Of a DNA stretch of 64,000 nucleotides, positions 1 through 30,391 are shown piece after piece. The first letter of the stretch is position 1, and each line of letters begins with the position of its first letter. Source of the DNA: Phaeosaccion multiseriatum. Its lineage: Eukaryota > Protista > Ochrophyta, other classes. The notes beneath the pieces were generated by a model that did not search any database, was not told the origin of the DNA, and saw only the letters and a list, made by a program, of their open reading frames with translations. Made by a program: the position numbers and the translations under genes. The DNA lies in contig OZ218950.1 in assembly GCA_965112735.1 (NCBI GenBank), positions 2,542,001 through 2,606,000 on the forward strand, read 5' to 3'.

Positions 1-7372
<7,372 letters not shown>

Positions 7373-23024: not shown

Positions 23025-23605
23025 TCAGCTCACACCTCTCTTTGCCTTTGGCAGAGAGAGAGTGACGTGTATAGGGCAGTGGTCGCTCCCTTGGACGTCG
23101 TAAGAGTGCCAGCACGCCTTCAGCAGCGGCAGCGCCGTGGTGGTGAGCAAGCCATAGTCCAAGCGAAAGCCCTTGTTCTCCGGACGCTGGAGAGGGACGC
23201 AGGAAGGGAGGGAGGGAAGGAGAGGGAGAGAGAGACGGAGACGGGGACAGCGACAGAGAGAGGGAGTGAGAGAGAGACGGGGAGAGGGAATGGGGGCGAA
23301 TGGCGAAGAGTGGCAGGCAGCGGGAAGAAGGTAACACCCCAGTAGTGCGGACGTTGACTTGCTCACCGCGACGGTCTTCATGCTCCACCAAGTGTAGTGC
23401 CCCTTCTTGTCGCCGTGTAGATGGCGAAAGGCGTCCGTGACTCCGTCCTCCCCCAGCCAGCGTGAGAAACTGTCGCGCTCCTCCGCGGTACACCCGCTCT
23501 GCTTCTTGATGTGCTGTGTGTGGGGAAAACCGCATAATTGACTTGATCAATGCTCAAAAAGAAAAAGATGGAAGCGAAATGGTTGAGAAGATTCGACTCA
23601 AGGCT

Positions 23606-23643
<38 letters not shown>

Positions 23644-24714
23644 TGAGGGGGAGAGGGTCTGATGGAGCGGCAAATCTACCCCAACCCACCGACTTACCGG
23701 CTTGCTGTAGTTGTAGATGTCAATGTCTCGGTGCGCCACATTCAAATCGCCCACAACAAGCACGGGCTTTCCCTTGCCCCCCTCCTTCTCCTCCAGTCCC
23801 CGAACGTAGCTGCGAAGAGCAAGGTCCCACCCCTCTGTGCGATGCTGGAGCCGCTCGAGCTTCTGTCCGCTGTTGGGCACGTACAGCGCCACCACGAAGA
23901 GGGAAGCGTACTCGACTGTGAGAGACCGCCCCTCCCCCTGGTAGGCGGCGTCGTCGATCCCGGTGCGAACGCTCAGTATTCGGCCGCAGCTGTTGATGTT
24001 GATACTGGGGATGGTGGTGGTGGTGGTGGTGGTGGTAGTGGTTGCTTTGGGGGCGGATACCGCTCCTGCTTCTTCCTTCTTTTGCTTCTTTGCTCCTCCA
24101 AAAAAGTCTCCGATCTTCTTTTGTTTCGCATTCGATCCCGCTACGGCCTTGCTACCTCCTGCTTCGCCTCCAGACGCAGTGTTCTCGGGGGCACACTCTT
24201 TCGGGAAGAAAATCGCAGTACCTGAGTAGCCCTTCTTATCTTGTGAGCAGCTGAACACTGAGTCCCAACCGGGGATCAAGTCCAGCTTCTGCATCGCAGC
24301 CACGTCCTTCTCCTGCAGCTTTGTCTCCTGAATGCAGACGAGGTGGGGCCGTTCTCTCGCCACCAGATCACTCAGCACCGTTGGGCACTTCTTCACAAAC
24401 CCGCGCAAGCCGTTCACGTTGAAGCTTACCACCTTAAAGTCGCTATCATCATCCGCCTTCACGTCCTCCCGGGGAGCCAAGTGTTCCCTGTCCGTCACGT
24501 CAGGTATCTTCACTGCTTTAGCCTTCTTCCCCTTCCCTGTTGCTTCTTCCGCAGCCGGTCTCTTCCCCCCCTTCTTTGTCGGCGAATCCTCTGGCTCCTT
24601 CTCTTCGTCTACACTATCAATACTCGACTGCCCAGCCTTCCCCCGCTTCTTCGTCTGCTTCTCATCGTCAGCCTGCTGCTTCATCTCCGGCTGCTGCTCC
24701 TTCTCCTTCTCCAT
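23025..24714 (-). CDS. APEX1: AP endonuclease of the exonuclease III family (APE1-like). Exons approx. 24714-23698, 23513-23367, 23186-23025
   Basis: Lys-rich N-terminus, then KVVSFNVNGLR, CIQETK, KKGYSGTAIF, EGRSLT, YVPNSGQKLERL, GDLNVAH, DAFRHLH...YTWWS, NKGFRLDY and GSDHCP. All the ExoIII/APE catalytic motifs are present. An alternative in-frame ATG lies at 24837. Confidence 0.92.
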
Positions 24715-24837
24715 ACTATAAACCCTCGATTTCTCGGGTCGAAGACGGGGTGATCCGATTGGCTGTTTGTAGACGCGAGGATGGGGGGGGGGGGAAATTG
24801 AAAGAGATCGCCTTCCAGCTTTCGAATCCAGATCCAT

Positions 24838-24980: not shown

Positions 24981-25192
24981 ATGGCGAACGGGGCCGCAAG
25001 GCGGGCTTCAGCCAGGAGGGGAAAGGCTGGCGCCCTGTCGAGCCTCGCCAAACTCATTGCGAGCGGGGAGAAGGTTGTCATAATCACGGGCGCGGGGCTC
25101 TCTGCTGCGAGTGGTATCCCCACTTTCAGGTGCGTGCGCTTATACACCTCGAGCTCTTTCTAGCTGCCTGCTTTCATGCCTACTGCGCTCTG

Positions 25193-25239
<47 letters not shown>

Positions 25240-28200
25240 GCTACTGTTCCGTCCTTGCCGTTTGTTGATGTGGACAGAGGGGCATCGGATAGCATATGGG
25301 GTGTGACCAGCACCGCCAAAGGCAGGCGGAGCGTCTTCCTCCACAGCCCCCTGCAGTGGTACAACGACTTCTGGTTAAAGCACTTCCACGTCAAGTACAC
25401 TAAGAAGACGCCCAACGCCGGTGAGTGGGAGCGACCCCACAAGTCTACGCCGCCACCCCTCCCCTCCTCCTCTTGATCTTATCTGACTGATCTGCTTTGC
25501 AATCCATCATGAACACCAACCACACAAGGCCACGAAGCGATTTCTGCCTTGGCCAAGAGCAGCAACGGATCGGTGACGGTGGTGACGCAGAACATCGACA
25601 CCCTGCACCAGAGCACGCGCACCGAGTGGGACTTCGAGCAGCAACTGGTGGAGGTGCATGGGAGGCTGGGCCTGTATAAATGTACGACTTGAGACAAAGG
25701 GAAGGGCGGGGAGTGTGTCGAGGGGACGAGTGATAGCATTCATCGAAGGTACGAAAGGTAGACGCGCTTCCACGCCATTTACTAACGCCTACCTCCCTCC
25801 CTCTCTCCCCCCCGCCTTGCTCCTGCCCCACTATAGGTGTGGAGGGCGAGGCGCCCGACTTAGACGATGATGTCACCATACACGGAGGCGAGGGGAGGTG
25901 TCCGTATGCTTGGGATAGGGTGCTCCAAGAAGGAGATCTCGTGCCGAAGGGTATTGGGGCGCTGCTCCGTGGCGACGAGGAGGAGGAGGAGACAGAAGGG
26001 CGAGAGTACAATGGAGGTGCTTCCTCGTCTTCTTCCGCGGGGGATGCAGCGGGGGTGGGAGGAGGAGGAGGAGGAGGAGGAGGAGGAGGAGGAGGAGGAG
26101 GAGGAGGAGGAGGAGGGGGAGGAGGAGGAGGAGGAGGAGGAGGGGGAGGAGGGCGGCTGACTACCGATATGCCTTTGTGCCCGTCCTGCTCTATGCCGTG
26201 CCCACCTCTGTCGCTGCTCTTTGACGAGGACTATTCCAGCCACTCCTTTTATCAGGTGAGGCCTGTGTGTGTGTGTGTGTGAGAGTGAGTGAGTGCGTGC
26301 GTGTGTGTGTGGTGTGTGTATGCGTGTGTGTGTGTGTGTGCATGTGTGTATGTGTACGTACGGATGTGTGTGTGTGTTTGTGCCCACACCAAGGGAATGT
26401 GCGGTTGGCAGGGGTGCTGTGCGTGTTGACGTACCTCTCGGAGCTCTCATGCTTCCTTCTCTCCTCCCTTTTACTCTCCTCCTCATCCTCGCCCCCCTCC
26501 TCCTCCCCGCATGACTAAATCGAATCGTCCGTCCATCCTAACATCTCTCTCTCCCCTCCGGCTGATTCACAGATGGATCGTGTGGAGGAGTGGTTGCACG
26601 GAGCCGCAGCCATGGTGTTTGTGGGTACATCCTTCACAGTGTCCATCACCTCAATCGCACTCGATGAGGTAAGTGAGTGAGTGGGTGTGGGAGGGAGGGA
26701 GGGACGGAGGGAAGGAGAGAGGGGAGGAAGGAGTGAGTGGGTGAGTGAGTCAGTGTAGACAGCAAAGAGCTCAGTACTACACCGTCTACCACAGACACTA
26801 CGATACACCACCCCCATTGTACCCGTCGATAGTCGTGGCGCGGTGAAGCAAGCAGCTATACCCTTGGCCTTGTCTCCGTCCCTCAACTCCCTCCCTCCCT
26901 CCCTCCCTCCCTCCCTCCCTCCCTCCCTCTCTCCCTCCCTCCCTCCCTCTCTCCCTCCCTCCCTCCCTCCCTCCCTTCCTCCCTCCCTCTCTCCCTCCCT
27001 CCCTCCCTCCCTCTCTCCCTCCCTCCCTCCCTCTCGCCCTCCCTCCCTCCCTCCCTCCCTCCCTCCCTCCCTCCCTCCCTCCCTCCCTCCCTCCCTCCCT
27101 CCCTCCCTCCCTCCCCTCACCCTACTCTACCCTACCCTACGTCAACCCCCTCCCTCCACCCCTATACCCCTATGCCCCAGGCTAAGCGCCGAGGTATCCC
27201 GGTGTTCGACTTCAACTTGCACTCCACCCTCTCTGCCTCGCGCTCCCTCCGTCTCCAGTGCGTGCCGGGAAGGGCAGAGGAGACCCTCCCACAGCTTCTC
27301 TCCTTGGTGGAGGCGCTGAGGAAGGAAGGACTGGGGCGAGAGGAGGAGGAGGAGGAGGAGGAGGAGGAGGAGGAGCAGGAGCAGGAGAAGGAGGGGGAGG
27401 AGGAGAAGGAGGAGGAGGAGAGGCACTCGCCTGCCCCTGCTTCCTCCGTCCCTGTCCCATCCTCCGGTGCCAGCGCTACTGCTACTGCTACTACTACTGC
27501 TGCTGCTGGTGATGCTACTGCTGCTGCTGCTGCTGCTGCCGATGTACCACCAACTGCTGCGGCTATTGCTTGTGGTGGTACCGGTGGTCGCGCAGCCTCG
27601 GCTCCCTCTGCTGCGTCCGAGACCCCCTCCGCCTCCCCCCTCTCCTCCCCCTCCTCCCCCTCCGAGTTCAAGGGTGCGCCGGGTAGCCGTAAGAGGGGAC
27701 GGAGAACAGCCTTCCCCTCCTCGGCCTCGGGCTCTGATGGCTCTGCGGTAGGCGCTTCTCGAACTACCACCAAGGAGGAGGAGGAGGAGGAGGAGGAGGA
27801 GGAGGAGGAGGAGTCCCACGGAGGGCGGTTTACGTTGTCATTTGTACCGCGTGCTATGCTCGCGAGAAGCCAGGTGCGTGGGTGCGTGCGTGCGTGCGTC
27901 GACTTGGGTATCTGCTCTGGTCGGGTGTGTTGGTTTGCTTTGTGTCGTCTTCTTCTGCCTATCCCCGTTGTGTCTTGTCATGTGTGAATGGCGATGGGAT
28001 TGGCGCGTCATGGAGCGAGGGAGGGGGGGGGGGGTTATTGACATATAGGAATCAACCCAAGAATTACTTATTATTATTAATGCGTGTGTGGGGCGGGGGG
28101 TGTGTGAAGTATTCGAATGCGTAAGGGGAAGGACAGCAGGAACGGCGCGGTACGGAAGGGAAGGGAAGTGATGAACCACCATCTAAGCAGCAGAGCAAAG

Positions 28201-28338
28201 TGATGAACCACCATCTAAGCAGCAGAGCAAAGTGATGAACCACCATCTAAGCAGCAGAGCAGAAGCTCTACGTTTCCTTTGCGCGTGCCTCGATATTGCA
28301 GTCCATTCTCACAACCCCGCATGTGTGTGTGCGCGCGC

Positions 28339-28370
<32 letters not shown>

Positions 28371-30391
28371 TATGCGCTGTGTGCCCACGTGTCTCTGTGT
28401 GTGCGTGGGTGCGTGGGTGGATGGGTGGGTGGAAAACAACAGGTGGTTGCACAGCTGAGTCTCTCCTTCTCCAGACAACTGCACCCGTCCCCTGCGGTGG
28501 AGGCGGGGGTGGAGGCGCTGTGGGCAGAGCAAGTCAACAAGAACCCTAACATGTTCAACGGGTCCAAGTTCCGACTCGCTGGGTTGGACTATCGCCCTGC
28601 TCCTCCTCCTGCTGCTGCTGCTGCTGTATCACCAACTGCTGGTGGTAGTGGTGGTGGTGGTGATGCTCCTGCGGGGAAGGGGAAGAAAGAGGAGGGGATG
28701 AAAGAGGAGGGGATGGAAGCGGAAGCGGAGGCGGAAGAAGGCGGGGCAAGAGCAAGGGCAAGGGCAAGGGAAGGGGCAAGGCTGCTTCTGCGCTTGTCTC
28801 TGACGGACTACAAAGACTTTAGGGGCACGAATTGGTGAGTGACTTGGGGGCAGTTTCAGATGATTGACCCCTGACCAATACTCCACCCTTCTTCACCATA
28901 TGCACACCTCTACGCATCTACACGAGAGAAAACTACCTAAGAAGTCTATAACTCAAACTAACCAACTGACTAACTACCGTCCAAACAAACGCCCCAAACG
29001 AACGCGTCAACAGGTCTCCACACAGTGCCCAGCTGGCAGCAGATGGCACTCGACTGCACGGAGACAGCTCGGCCTTCCTCAGTCAGAAGCTCGGGGTGGG
29101 TGCGGTGGTGCTGACGGCCGACAATCGCTGTGTGCTCATCAGGAGGAGTGGGAAAGTGGCCGAGGGACGGGGCGCCATTGATGTGCCGGGTGGACACCCG
29201 GAGCCGGCCAAGATTGGCTTCACGCATGCCACTCTGAAGGCTTTGGAGGAGATGGAGGAGGAGGGGGGGGAGGAGGGGCACGGGCAGCGGCAAGTGCAAG
29301 GGCAAGGGGAAGGGGAAGGGGAAGGGGAAGGGGAAGGGGAAGGGAAAGGGCAGACTCTCACAAGCACTAGCACTGGCACTCACACAAGCTCAAGCAGGGG
29401 CAGCAGCACCGGCAGGAGGAGGAACAGGGAGGAGTGGGGTTTGGCCGCCGTCGGAGAGCTGTTCGACAGTGTGCTGGACGAGGTCTGTGACGAAACGAAC
29501 GTTCCGAGAGAGGTCCTGAGCGACCCGCTCCTCATGGGTATTGTGGGGCAGAGCAACAGTCAGGGCTGCCCCTCCAGTGCCTTCTTGGTGCGCTGTCGGC
29601 TCACGGCGGAGGAGGTAGGTGGGTGGATGGTTTAGGGTTTGTGGGTTGTGAGTTTTGAGTTTGAGATTTGAAGGAAACGGCCTCAGTCCCTTACCCTTAC
29701 TTTGCCCGTGTTTGCCTGCTTGGCTGCCTGCTTGGCTGCCTGCTTGGTTGCCTGCTTGGCTGCCTGCTTGGTTGACTGCTTGGGTGTACTCGTTGTCACC
29801 CCTCCCCCGCCCCTGCTTGGCATACACAATCCAACATACGACCACCCCACCCCCTTGTTTGGCAAAGACAAAACCCCCGCCATCGCCCCACCCCCCCCCT
29901 AAACATCTCTGAAGCCTCCCTCAATTCTGCTGGCTGCTGCCTTCCTCTTGATGCCCAACCAATGCCTTGGATCGGATCTGATGCCCAAACAGGTGAAGGA
30001 GCGATATCGACAGGGGCCTCGGGAGGCCTTCGAGACCACGGCTCTACACTGCATCCCCATGGCCTCCGTGTCGCGGCAACTCAAGCGGATAGGCGGGATG
30101 GCGGGGCGAAGGGGCAGAGTGGGAAGGAGGGAGAGCGGCGACAAGGCTGATACTGAAGCTGATGCTGATGCTGAGGCTAAGGCTGGAGCTGAGGGCGGGC
30201 CTTCTGGACCTTGGGAGGGTAGGCCTTCAAGGGAGAGGGAGGCGGAGGGGGAGGAGGAGGAGGAGGAGGAGGAGGAGGAGGAGGAGGAGGAAGGCGACGA
30301 GGAGGGGCGTCTTCTGGAGACCGCCACACCTTCCTGCGAGGGATGTCTGGTCTTATTGGAGCGGATGATGCGGCGGGAGGGGTGGCAATGA
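24981..30391 (+). CDS. Fusion of a Sir2-family NAD+-dependent deacylase and a NUDT22-like Nudix hydrolase. Exons approx. 24981-25129, 25278-25420, 25529-25681, 25837-26255, 26573-26668, 27181-27873, 28443-28834, 29014-29614, 29993-30391
   Basis: Sirtuin motifs: [32 protein letters not shown], Zn cysteines (YKC...RCPY...CPSC), LFDE, FVGTS, FN. NUDT22-type motifs: [72 protein letters not shown]. Exon 27181-27873 has no stop, carries the end of the sirtuin and the start of the Nudix domain, and splices in phase 0 (CAG|GTGCGT...AACAG|GTG). Confidence 0.85.
28166..28261. repeat. Three perfect tandem copies of a 32-bp unit, intronic
   Basis: AAGTGATGAACCACCATCTAAGCAGCAGAGCA x3 with no spacers. Confidence 0.95.

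Follow-up and report, generated by a model that had tools for sequence, protein, structure and literature searches.

A gene on the forward strand of the Phaeosaccion multiseriatum genome (GenBank assembly GCA_965112735.1, contig OZ218950.1) almost certainly encodes a single protein in which a sirtuin (Sir2) domain is followed by a NUDT22-type Nudix domain. The gene lies at positions 24981-30391 of the 64,000-nucleotide (nt) stretch analysed here (contig positions 2,542,001 to 2,606,000), which we call the window. The Sir2-NUDT22 combination brings together two known enzyme families, is conserved and has, as far as the literature search shows, not been described before; the window gene is one member of it. 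The best overall explanation, to which we give a probability of roughly 0.55, is a bifunctional protein of 1014 amino acids (aa), belonging to a conserved ochrophyte Sir2-NUDT22 family, in which the Nudix half would clear the nucleotide by-product of the sirtuin half.

Gene model and domain organisation

The gene was rebuilt from sequence as nine exons, and all introns (8/8) have GT..AG ends. The spliced coding sequence of 3045 nt has no internal stop, and the encoded protein runs from a Sir2 domain through a low-complexity linker of ~165 aa to a full NUDT22-type domain. Its parts are as follows.

Exon 1, 24981-25129, + strand: start codon, N-terminal helix and sirtuin NAD-binding motif; matches the beginnings of fused orthologues in the alignment (Scytosiphon P0158, Chrysoparadoxa P0011, and P0015).
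Exon 2, 25278-25420, + strand: sirtuin cofactor-loop region including PNAG; from the gene model and orthologue alignment.
Exon 3, 25529-25681, + strand: TQNID, catalytic His141 (VEVHG) and the first zinc ligand Cys149; Pfam SIR2, 26.9 bits.
Exon 4, 25837-26255, + strand: zinc module with Cys170, Cys263 and Cys266, an acidic and ~45-residue poly-Gly insertion, and FDEDY…SHSFYQ; from the gene model and orthologue alignment.
Exon 5, 26573-26668, + strand: second Rossmann half with the VFVGTS motif; from the gene model and orthologue alignment.
Exon 6, 27181-27873, + strand: sirtuin C-terminus (aa 321-~369), Glu/Ala/Ser linker (~aa 370-533) and first NUDT22 strand (aa 535-551); from alignment, the starts of stand-alone proteins and the AlphaFold2 (AF2) model of orthologue P0015.
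Basic patch SRKRGRR in the linker, 27685-27705 (aa 489-495), + strand: read directly from the sequence.
Intron 6, 27874-28442, + strand: GT..AG, phase 0; lies inside the NUDT22 N-terminal domain, not between the domains.
Exon 7, 28443-28834, + strand: NUDT22 N-terminal domain with a low-complexity insertion of ~65 aa; matches human NUDT22 residues 24-69 and 74-95.
Exon 8, 29014-29614, + strand: Nudix domain with the modified box PGGHPEP … E830, E838, E842, interrupted by a low-complexity insertion of ~70 aa; matches human NUDT22 (5LF9).
Exon 9, 29993-30391, + strand: C-terminal part of NUDT22 with TPSCEG and an acidic insertion, TGA stop at 30389-30391; the TPS.EG motif aligns with all orthologues.

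The original prediction, made by a model from the DNA letters, had named a set of sirtuin, linker and NUDT22 motifs, and every one of them was found at its place in the rebuilt model. It had also described exon 6 as stop-free and spliced in phase to the NUDT22 exons. This exon is a single open frame of 231 codons that covers the end of the sirtuin, the linker and the NUDT22 start (aa 535-551, 27823-27873), and the 27873/28443 junction is phase 0. Were intron 6 retained, the frame would stop at 27987. The open frame of the linker alone is weak evidence, as its repeat composition keeps other frames and the opposite strand open there too.

The gene is rich in microsatellites. Coding (GGA)n/(GAG)n and GGGCAA-type units at 26058-26150, 27330-27420, 27770-27815, 29276-29352 and 30238-30291 give rise to the ~45-residue poly-Gly tract of the zinc module, the poly-Glu tracts of the linker and C-terminus, and the Gly/Glu/Gln-rich insertion of the Nudix box. 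All are frame-preserving, and the loops at the same sites are much shorter in orthologues. Intron 6 holds a perfect tandem repeat of three 32-nt units (AAGTGATGAACCACCATCTAAGCAGCAGAGCA) followed by (TG)22 (28166-28261), and intron 8 a repeat of six 12-nt units (29713-29783).

Fused orthologues

Exon 8 was compared by phmmer with 1.84 billion representative sequences; Pfam was then run on the long matches, and names came from cluster look-ups and a profile search. The matches comprise ordinary NUDT22 proteins of ~300 aa and long proteins with a C-terminal NUDT22 domain; Pfam finds an N-terminal SIR2 domain in long matches P0011 (71.7 bits), P0015 (79.3 bits) and P0057 (76.8 bits). Hidden Markov models (HMMs) of both halves match 12 non-redundant sequences, always with Sir2 first and NUDT22 second. 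Besides the window model there are thus eleven fused sequences. The window protein is colinear with all fused orthologues, at 35-46% identity; the alignment begins with the first helix, continues to TPS.EG at the C-terminus and also crosses the exon 6/7 junction. Its extra length consists of low-complexity insertions (the named database orthologues have 605-937 aa). Fused orthologues from named organisms are listed below; several metagenomic or Logan proteins also belong to the set.

Nannochloropsis salina: TFJ81716.1.
Nannochloropsis gaditana: EWM27191.1 / UniRef W7U2V3, labelled 'transcriptional sir2 family'.
Nannochloropsis oceanica: P0162.
Scytosiphon promiscuus: CAM9481315.1 (unnamed protein product, Phaeoexplorer).
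Ectocarpus sp. 13: P0163 (unnamed protein product, Phaeoexplorer).
Choristocarpus tenellus: CAM9470057.1 (unnamed protein product, Phaeoexplorer).
Phaeothamnion confervicola: CAM9212534.1 (unnamed protein product, Phaeoexplorer).
Chrysoparadoxa australica: CAM9597837.1 (unnamed protein product, Phaeoexplorer).

Precomputed Pfam annotation of the database orthologues consists of PF02146 only, and the Nudix half carries no annotation. A fold search of the protein Atlas returned stand-alone NUDT22 and Sir2 clusters only. A full-text literature search found no paper describing a Sir2-NUDT22 fusion. The belief that no such fusion had been described is thus consistent with the literature searched, but the architecture itself is already present in public protein databases, labelled as Sir2 or unnamed.

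One gene or two

The alternative gene structure is a pair of neighbouring genes, one a sirtuin terminated by the stop codon at 27987 that is reached without splicing, the other a NUDT22 gene starting at Met546 (~27856), with the fused model an artefact or a minor isoform. We regard this as very unlikely. It can draw on an in-frame Met 6 codons before the donor, on a linker whose open frame is uninformative by itself, and on public sequencing data: the RNA runs contain just 0.05-0.07 of the sampled window words, probably from repeats, and four runs of one sample contain 0.92-0.94 of them, introns included; these four hence represent DNA and are probably the source of the assembly. The evidence against it can be summarised as (i) eleven other fused sequences, two of them single open reading frames (ORFs) and one without a Nudix start Met; (ii) an intron position common to the window and a metagenomic locus; (iii) a conserved NUDT22 β1 strand upstream of and across Met546; (iv) the lack of both space and signal for a promoter of its own in front of the NUDT22 part.

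The uninterrupted fused ORFs lie at 199-2229 of a Nannochloropsis-type contig (L001, 676 codons) and at 3120-4937 of L003 (605 codons). The metagenomic locus is L002 (JGI metagenome 3300081709, 4502-6810), from which a prokaryote-style caller gave a 348-aa 'SIR2' and a 375-aa 'hypothetical' protein, 131 bp apart. A donor CAG/GTGAGA at 5527/5528 and an acceptor TAG/GTG at 5673/5674 delimit a 146-nt, phase-0 GT..AG intron (5528-5673). Spliced L002 reads …RFTLSTLLPPLAQVQ up to the junction and VRVVLSPAASRIPH… after it, and the intron falls at a codon boundary homologous to window intron 6. The spliced protein of 720 residues has no Met between residues 197 and 694; its Nudix half, lacking a start Met, cannot be a separate protein.

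The L002 gap was also considered as the boundary of two adjacent genes. This was rejected in view of the GT..AG ends, the phase 0, the conserved sequence restored by splicing and the downstream ORF, which has only a GTG 'start'. Prokaryote-style gene callers thus split the Sir2-NUDT22 gene at its intron, which makes counts of stand-alone against fused proteins from such metagenome annotations unreliable. Stand-alone 'NAD-dependent deacetylase' entries of 348-372 aa (P0164-P0166) may be similar split calls.

In Scytosiphon (L005, 6503-7375) one exon encodes aa 313-603, comprising the sirtuin C-terminus, the linker and NUDT22 as far as HPDPE; the NUDT22 N-terminal intron that follows HPDPE lies 18 codons downstream of the site shared by the window and L002 (after …SQ and …VQ, respectively). 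L007 and L008 represent a further eustigmatophyte-type copy, whose Sir2 domain is interrupted by an intron; the eustigmatophyte fusion genes have none between the halves. At the Phaeothamnion locus tblastn mapping recovered the first two exons only. A gap in Ectocarpus sp. 13 P0163 at the NUDT22 N-terminal intron site looks like a mis-called splice site.

The position of the NUDT22 N-terminus bears directly on Met546, the sole candidate internal start. Stand-alone NUDT22 proteins begin 53-62 residues before FNGSKFRL, equivalent to window aa ~532-534, right after the poly-Glu tract and upstream of Met546. The compact orthologue P0015 (605 aa) has almost no linker, and in its AF2 model (predicted local distance difference test score, pLDDT, 89.2; predicted template modelling score, pTM, 0.74) the first NUDT22 strand, residues 298-308 (window F537-L547), directly follows the last sirtuin helix. 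A start at Met546 would cut this strand. The claim of a single Sir2-NUDT22 gene is strongly supported by comparison, namely by the colinear orthologues, the two intronless ORFs, the common intron position and the placing of the NUDT22 N-terminus in the sirtuin-linker exon.

The sirtuin half

The spliced model contains GAGLS (aa 37-41), TQNID (117-121), His141 in VEVHG and GTS (306-308). The NAD-binding and catalytic motifs are conserved in every orthologue that covers those regions, and the zinc cysteines C149, C170, C263 and C266 are invariant columns of the orthologue alignment. Exon 3 alone passes the Pfam SIR2 (PF02146) cut-off of 24 bits, the colinear orthologues score 72-82 bits, and an HMM built from the Sir2 halves of the fused orthologues gives the window model 356 bits. 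In the exon-by-exon Pfam search most short exons had no match, and the linker and C-terminal exons returned low-complexity noise only. A search of the Protein Data Bank with exon 4 was dominated by poly-Gly linkers; orthologues carry variable insertions in the same zinc-module loop.

The closest solved structure to the Sir2 half is SIRT5 (E=1e-16, HMMER with orthologue P0015), and Foldseek of the P0015 AF2 model matches Sir2Af2/SIRT5 with template modelling (TM) scores of 0.73-0.81. With the class III-type sirtuins (human SIRT5, Archaeoglobus Sir2Af1/Af2, Plasmodium Sir2A) the half has in common GAGxSxxSGIPTFRG, PNxGH, TQNID, the catalytic His and four zinc Cys; it differs from them by the large insertions in its zinc module. 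It also lacks the carboxylate-binding Tyr/Arg pair with which SIRT5 selects succinyl- or malonyl-lysine. Tyr102/Arg105 of SIRT5 correspond to Phe/Pro in P0015 and to Phe81/His87 in the window, a moderately secure mapping through the P0015-SIRT5 HMMER alignment, which has a 3-residue gap nearby. A succinyl/malonyl preference is thus not to be assumed.

The NUDT22 half

Exon 8 matches human NUDT22 (5LF9) with E=2.9e-27 over residues 100-162 and 171-234, and exon 7 does so with E=6e-5 over residues 24-69 and 74-95. An HMM of the NUDT22 halves of the fused orthologues gives the window model 277 bits. Foldseek of the P0015 AF2 model finds NUDT22 (5LOR) with a TM score of 0.89 and 36% identity over 312 alignment columns. 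The Pfam NUDIX model (PF00293) gives exon 8 19.2 bits, below its cut-off of 21.1, and the sequence does not fit the canonical box GX5EX7REUXEEXGU; human NUDT22, too, is without a conventional Nudix box (PMC5688067). Since the NUDT22 half falls under the Pfam cut-off, databases annotate the Sir2 half only, and our finding corrects this annotation, in which the Nudix half has been invisible to Pfam.

Conservation was assessed in an alignment of 101 NUDT22 domains, taking columns where 80% or more of the 89 stand-alone proteins have one and the same residue. The 12 fused proteins as a clade keep 35/35 of these positions, and the Gly83 equivalent alone is broadly substituted. The window itself deviates at two of the 35, with Ser670 at the Gly83 equivalent and Thr897 in place of Ser. 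It retains P740, G742, H743, E745, P746, E830, E838 and E842 (PGGHPEP … E-x7-E-x3-E) and, in exon 7, the family positions K593, F594, R595, T672, Y674 and T680. KFR and T.Y…T are thus among the retained motifs, together with PGGHPEP and all three glutamates of the box; in 12/12 fused sequences neither PGGHPEP nor the metal-binding and catalytic glutamates vary. Retention of the family-conserved positions suggests that the NUDT22 half is very probably catalytic, and by sequence criteria it is an orthodox NUDT22 with both domains present.

Human NUDT22 (5LF9, 5LOR, 5LOU), a UDP-glucose/UDP-galactose pyrophosphatase, shares with the window protein the modified Nudix box, KFRL and TDY..GTNW. It is a stand-alone protein of 303 aa, whereas the window domain follows a sirtuin in the same protein and is enlarged by three low-complexity insertions, each of ~65-85 aa. 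Other unusual NUDT22 architectures occurred among the matches. P0098 (1059 aa) has ALS2CR8 and Asparaginase_2 ahead of a C-terminal NUDT22, and P0013 (639 aa) and P0046 (618 aa) each have two tandem NUDT22 units; all three may be merged gene models.

Distribution and origin of the fusion

A quick IQ-TREE of 103 NUDT22 domains puts every fused sequence into a single clade (SH-like approximate likelihood ratio test, SH-aLRT, 96), which also includes stand-alone diatom proteins such as Thalassiosira exigua KAL7546623.1. Two fused groups are well supported, one of brown algae, Phaeothamnion, Chrysoparadoxa, the window and L002, the other of eustigmatophytes; their mutual relation is not settled by this quick tree. 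Two 'unfused' rows inside the fused groups are the L002 split call and a truncated fragment. The nearest relative of the window is Phaeothamnion, with 50% identity over the NUDT22 domain.

A separate sirtuin from the same subfamily occurs in diatoms (Cyclotella) and has no NUDT22 match in it, and there are stand-alone NUDT22 clusters from oomycetes, chordates and green algae. In diatoms and oomycetes the sirtuin and NUDT22 genes are separate; the Thalassiosira NUDT22 gene lies 243 bp from a contig end, so that linkage to a sirtuin is not visible there. The stand-alone genes of these groups, set beside the fused ochrophyte forms, place the origin of the fusion within the ochrophytes, in one or two events, as judged from sequence.

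Proposed function

Both halves are probably catalytic, a predicted NAD+-dependent lysine deacylase being tethered to a predicted Mg2+-dependent nucleoside-diphosphate-sugar pyrophosphatase. The presence of the fusion from eustigmatophytes to brown algae is independent genetic evidence of two enzymes acting together. We propose product clearance as the mechanism because the ADP-ribose moiety is the obvious shared chemistry of Sir2 and Nudix. The sirtuin would convert NAD+ and acyl-lysine to nicotinamide and 2'/3'-O-acyl-ADP-ribose. The tethered Nudix half would then cleave O-acyl-ADP-ribose, or ADP-ribose derived from it, to AMP and (acyl)ribose-5-phosphate. This would end the signal, ease the accumulation of product around the enzyme and recycle AMP to the pool. 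We advance this role of the Nudix half tentatively, at somewhat less than even odds. O-acetyl-ADP-ribose is a sirtuin product with dedicated hydrolases (PMC7050489), and the Nudix enzyme Ysa1 controls ADP-ribose and O-acetyl-ADP-ribose levels (PMC4004948).

The same logic, a Sir2 enzyme with a processor of its ADP-ribose moiety, is found in sirtuin-macrodomain pairs (SirTM/Zn-macro) and in the macrodomain/ARH3 O-acetyl-ADP-ribose hydrolases (PMC7050489, PMC11490716). There the partner has a macro or ARH fold and cleaves an ester or glycosidic bond, whereas the window protein has a Nudix partner that would cleave a pyrophosphate; the sirtuin-macrodomain pairs are mostly operon partners and the window gene is a eukaryotic fusion. 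Ysa1, NUDT5, NUDT9 and NUDT14 are likewise Nudix enzymes that cleave nucleoside-diphosphate sugars, NUDT14 acting on ADP-ribose and ADP-glucose (PMC5688067). They differ in having a canonical Nudix box and another subfamily architecture, and in not being joined to a sirtuin. NUDT22 is a phylogenetic outlier among human Nudix proteins (PMC5688067), with one activity known in vitro, UDP-glucose hydrolysis, and a biology that is only starting to be understood. If product clearance is correct, sirtuins would have a dedicated, built-in Nudix product hydrolase, and the question of the NUDT22 substrate would be re-opened. A wider extension, in which NUDT22-family enzymes including the stand-alone animal, plant and oomycete forms act with sirtuins as pyrophosphatases of O-acyl-ADP-ribose or a related NAD-derived nucleotide, seems unlikely.

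A number of observations weigh against our proposal. Human NUDT22 is a UDP-glucose hydrolase (PMC10101856) and was without clear activity in a screen of 52 substrates (PMC5688067); judging by what that paper says of NUDT5 and NUDT14, ADP-ribose and ADP-glucose were among those substrates. The fused NUDT22 domains bear no sequence sign of a changed substrate or of a switch from uridine to adenine nucleotides, and their clade has no unusually long branches in the quick tree. The suggestion that the fusion implies a new substrate for the NUDT22 clade is thus left without sequence support, the family-wide conserved positions being retained. Linker length varies from about 0 (P0015) to 190 aa across the fused proteins, which makes a fixed channel between the active sites unlikely. 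Minor products may also exist, namely a sirtuin-only isoform through retention of intron 6, with its stop at 27987, or a transcript for the Nudix part alone that starts at Met546.

These observations bear on the strongest rival explanation, in which the Nudix half still has the activity known for NUDT22, splitting UDP-glucose/UDP-galactose into UMP and hexose-1-phosphate, and the coupling is regulatory or metabolic. NAD+/acylation status may then be tied to pyrimidine salvage or to the UDP-glucose supply for β-glucan storage or wall polymers; in other variants the fusion might do no more than co-dose or co-localise the two activities, or the sirtuin might have the Nudix half, or a partner of both halves, as its target. 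The 35 family positions retained in the fused clade, KFR and T.Y…T among them, favour this explanation, as do the superposition of the whole human NUDT22 chain, the nesting of the fused sequences at ordinary branch lengths within a stramenopile NUDT22 clade, and the human enzymology. Fusion partners, however, usually share a metabolite, and for a Sir2 enzyme and a nucleoside-diphosphate-sugar pyrophosphatase this points to ADP-ribose. The literature search found no biochemical link between sirtuins and UDP-hexoses, and it found no test of O-acyl-ADP-ribose on NUDT22. We consider retained UDP-hexose hydrolysis possible, if doubtful. It would imply an unexpected link from NAD+/acylation signalling to UDP-sugar or pyrimidine metabolism in β-glucan-storing algae.

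A purely regulatory role is highly improbable. Here the NUDT22 half would be a ligand sensor that controls the sirtuin in cis, binding a nucleotide-sugar or NAD metabolite with no need for turnover. A Nudix-like domain that regulates a sirtuin has a precedent in DBC1 (CCAR2) and SIRT1, and the two-domain pTM of 0.74 for P0015 is a hint that the domains are arranged in a defined way. The inactive Nudix-like domain of DBC1 is said to have been proposed to act on SIRT1 by Anantharaman and Aravind in 2008. Although DBC1 likewise ties a Nudix fold functionally to a sirtuin, its domain is catalytically inactive and works in trans, while the window Nudix domain has its catalytic residues intact and sits in cis. 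The invariant glutamates and PGGHPEP of the 12 fused sequences argue for retained hydrolysis, and long disordered linkers in several lineages speak against a tight allosteric interface.

With respect to location, the window protein has no signal or plastid presequence. The SRKRGRR patch of its linker is a possible nuclear localisation signal, and similar K/R patches are present in the Scytosiphon (SSKRARR), Phaeothamnion (NKRMR) and Choristocarpus (GKRPGK) linkers. The lack of a presequence together with the KR-rich patch weakly suggests a nuclear or cytosolic protein.

Neighbouring genes

On the eustigmatophyte-type contigs a WD40 beta-propeller gene follows the fusion gene on the same strand (L001 2878-3810; L007/L008 5615-7300), a conserved local synteny; this neighbour is not obviously present in the window. 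Upstream of the window gene, an ORF of the Exo_endo_phos family (APE1/ExoIII-like; Pfam 42.4 bits) occupies 23554-24837 on the - strand and is probably only the first exon of its gene. It is arranged head-to-head with the fusion gene, and the 143 bp between the two start codons suggest a shared bidirectional promoter.

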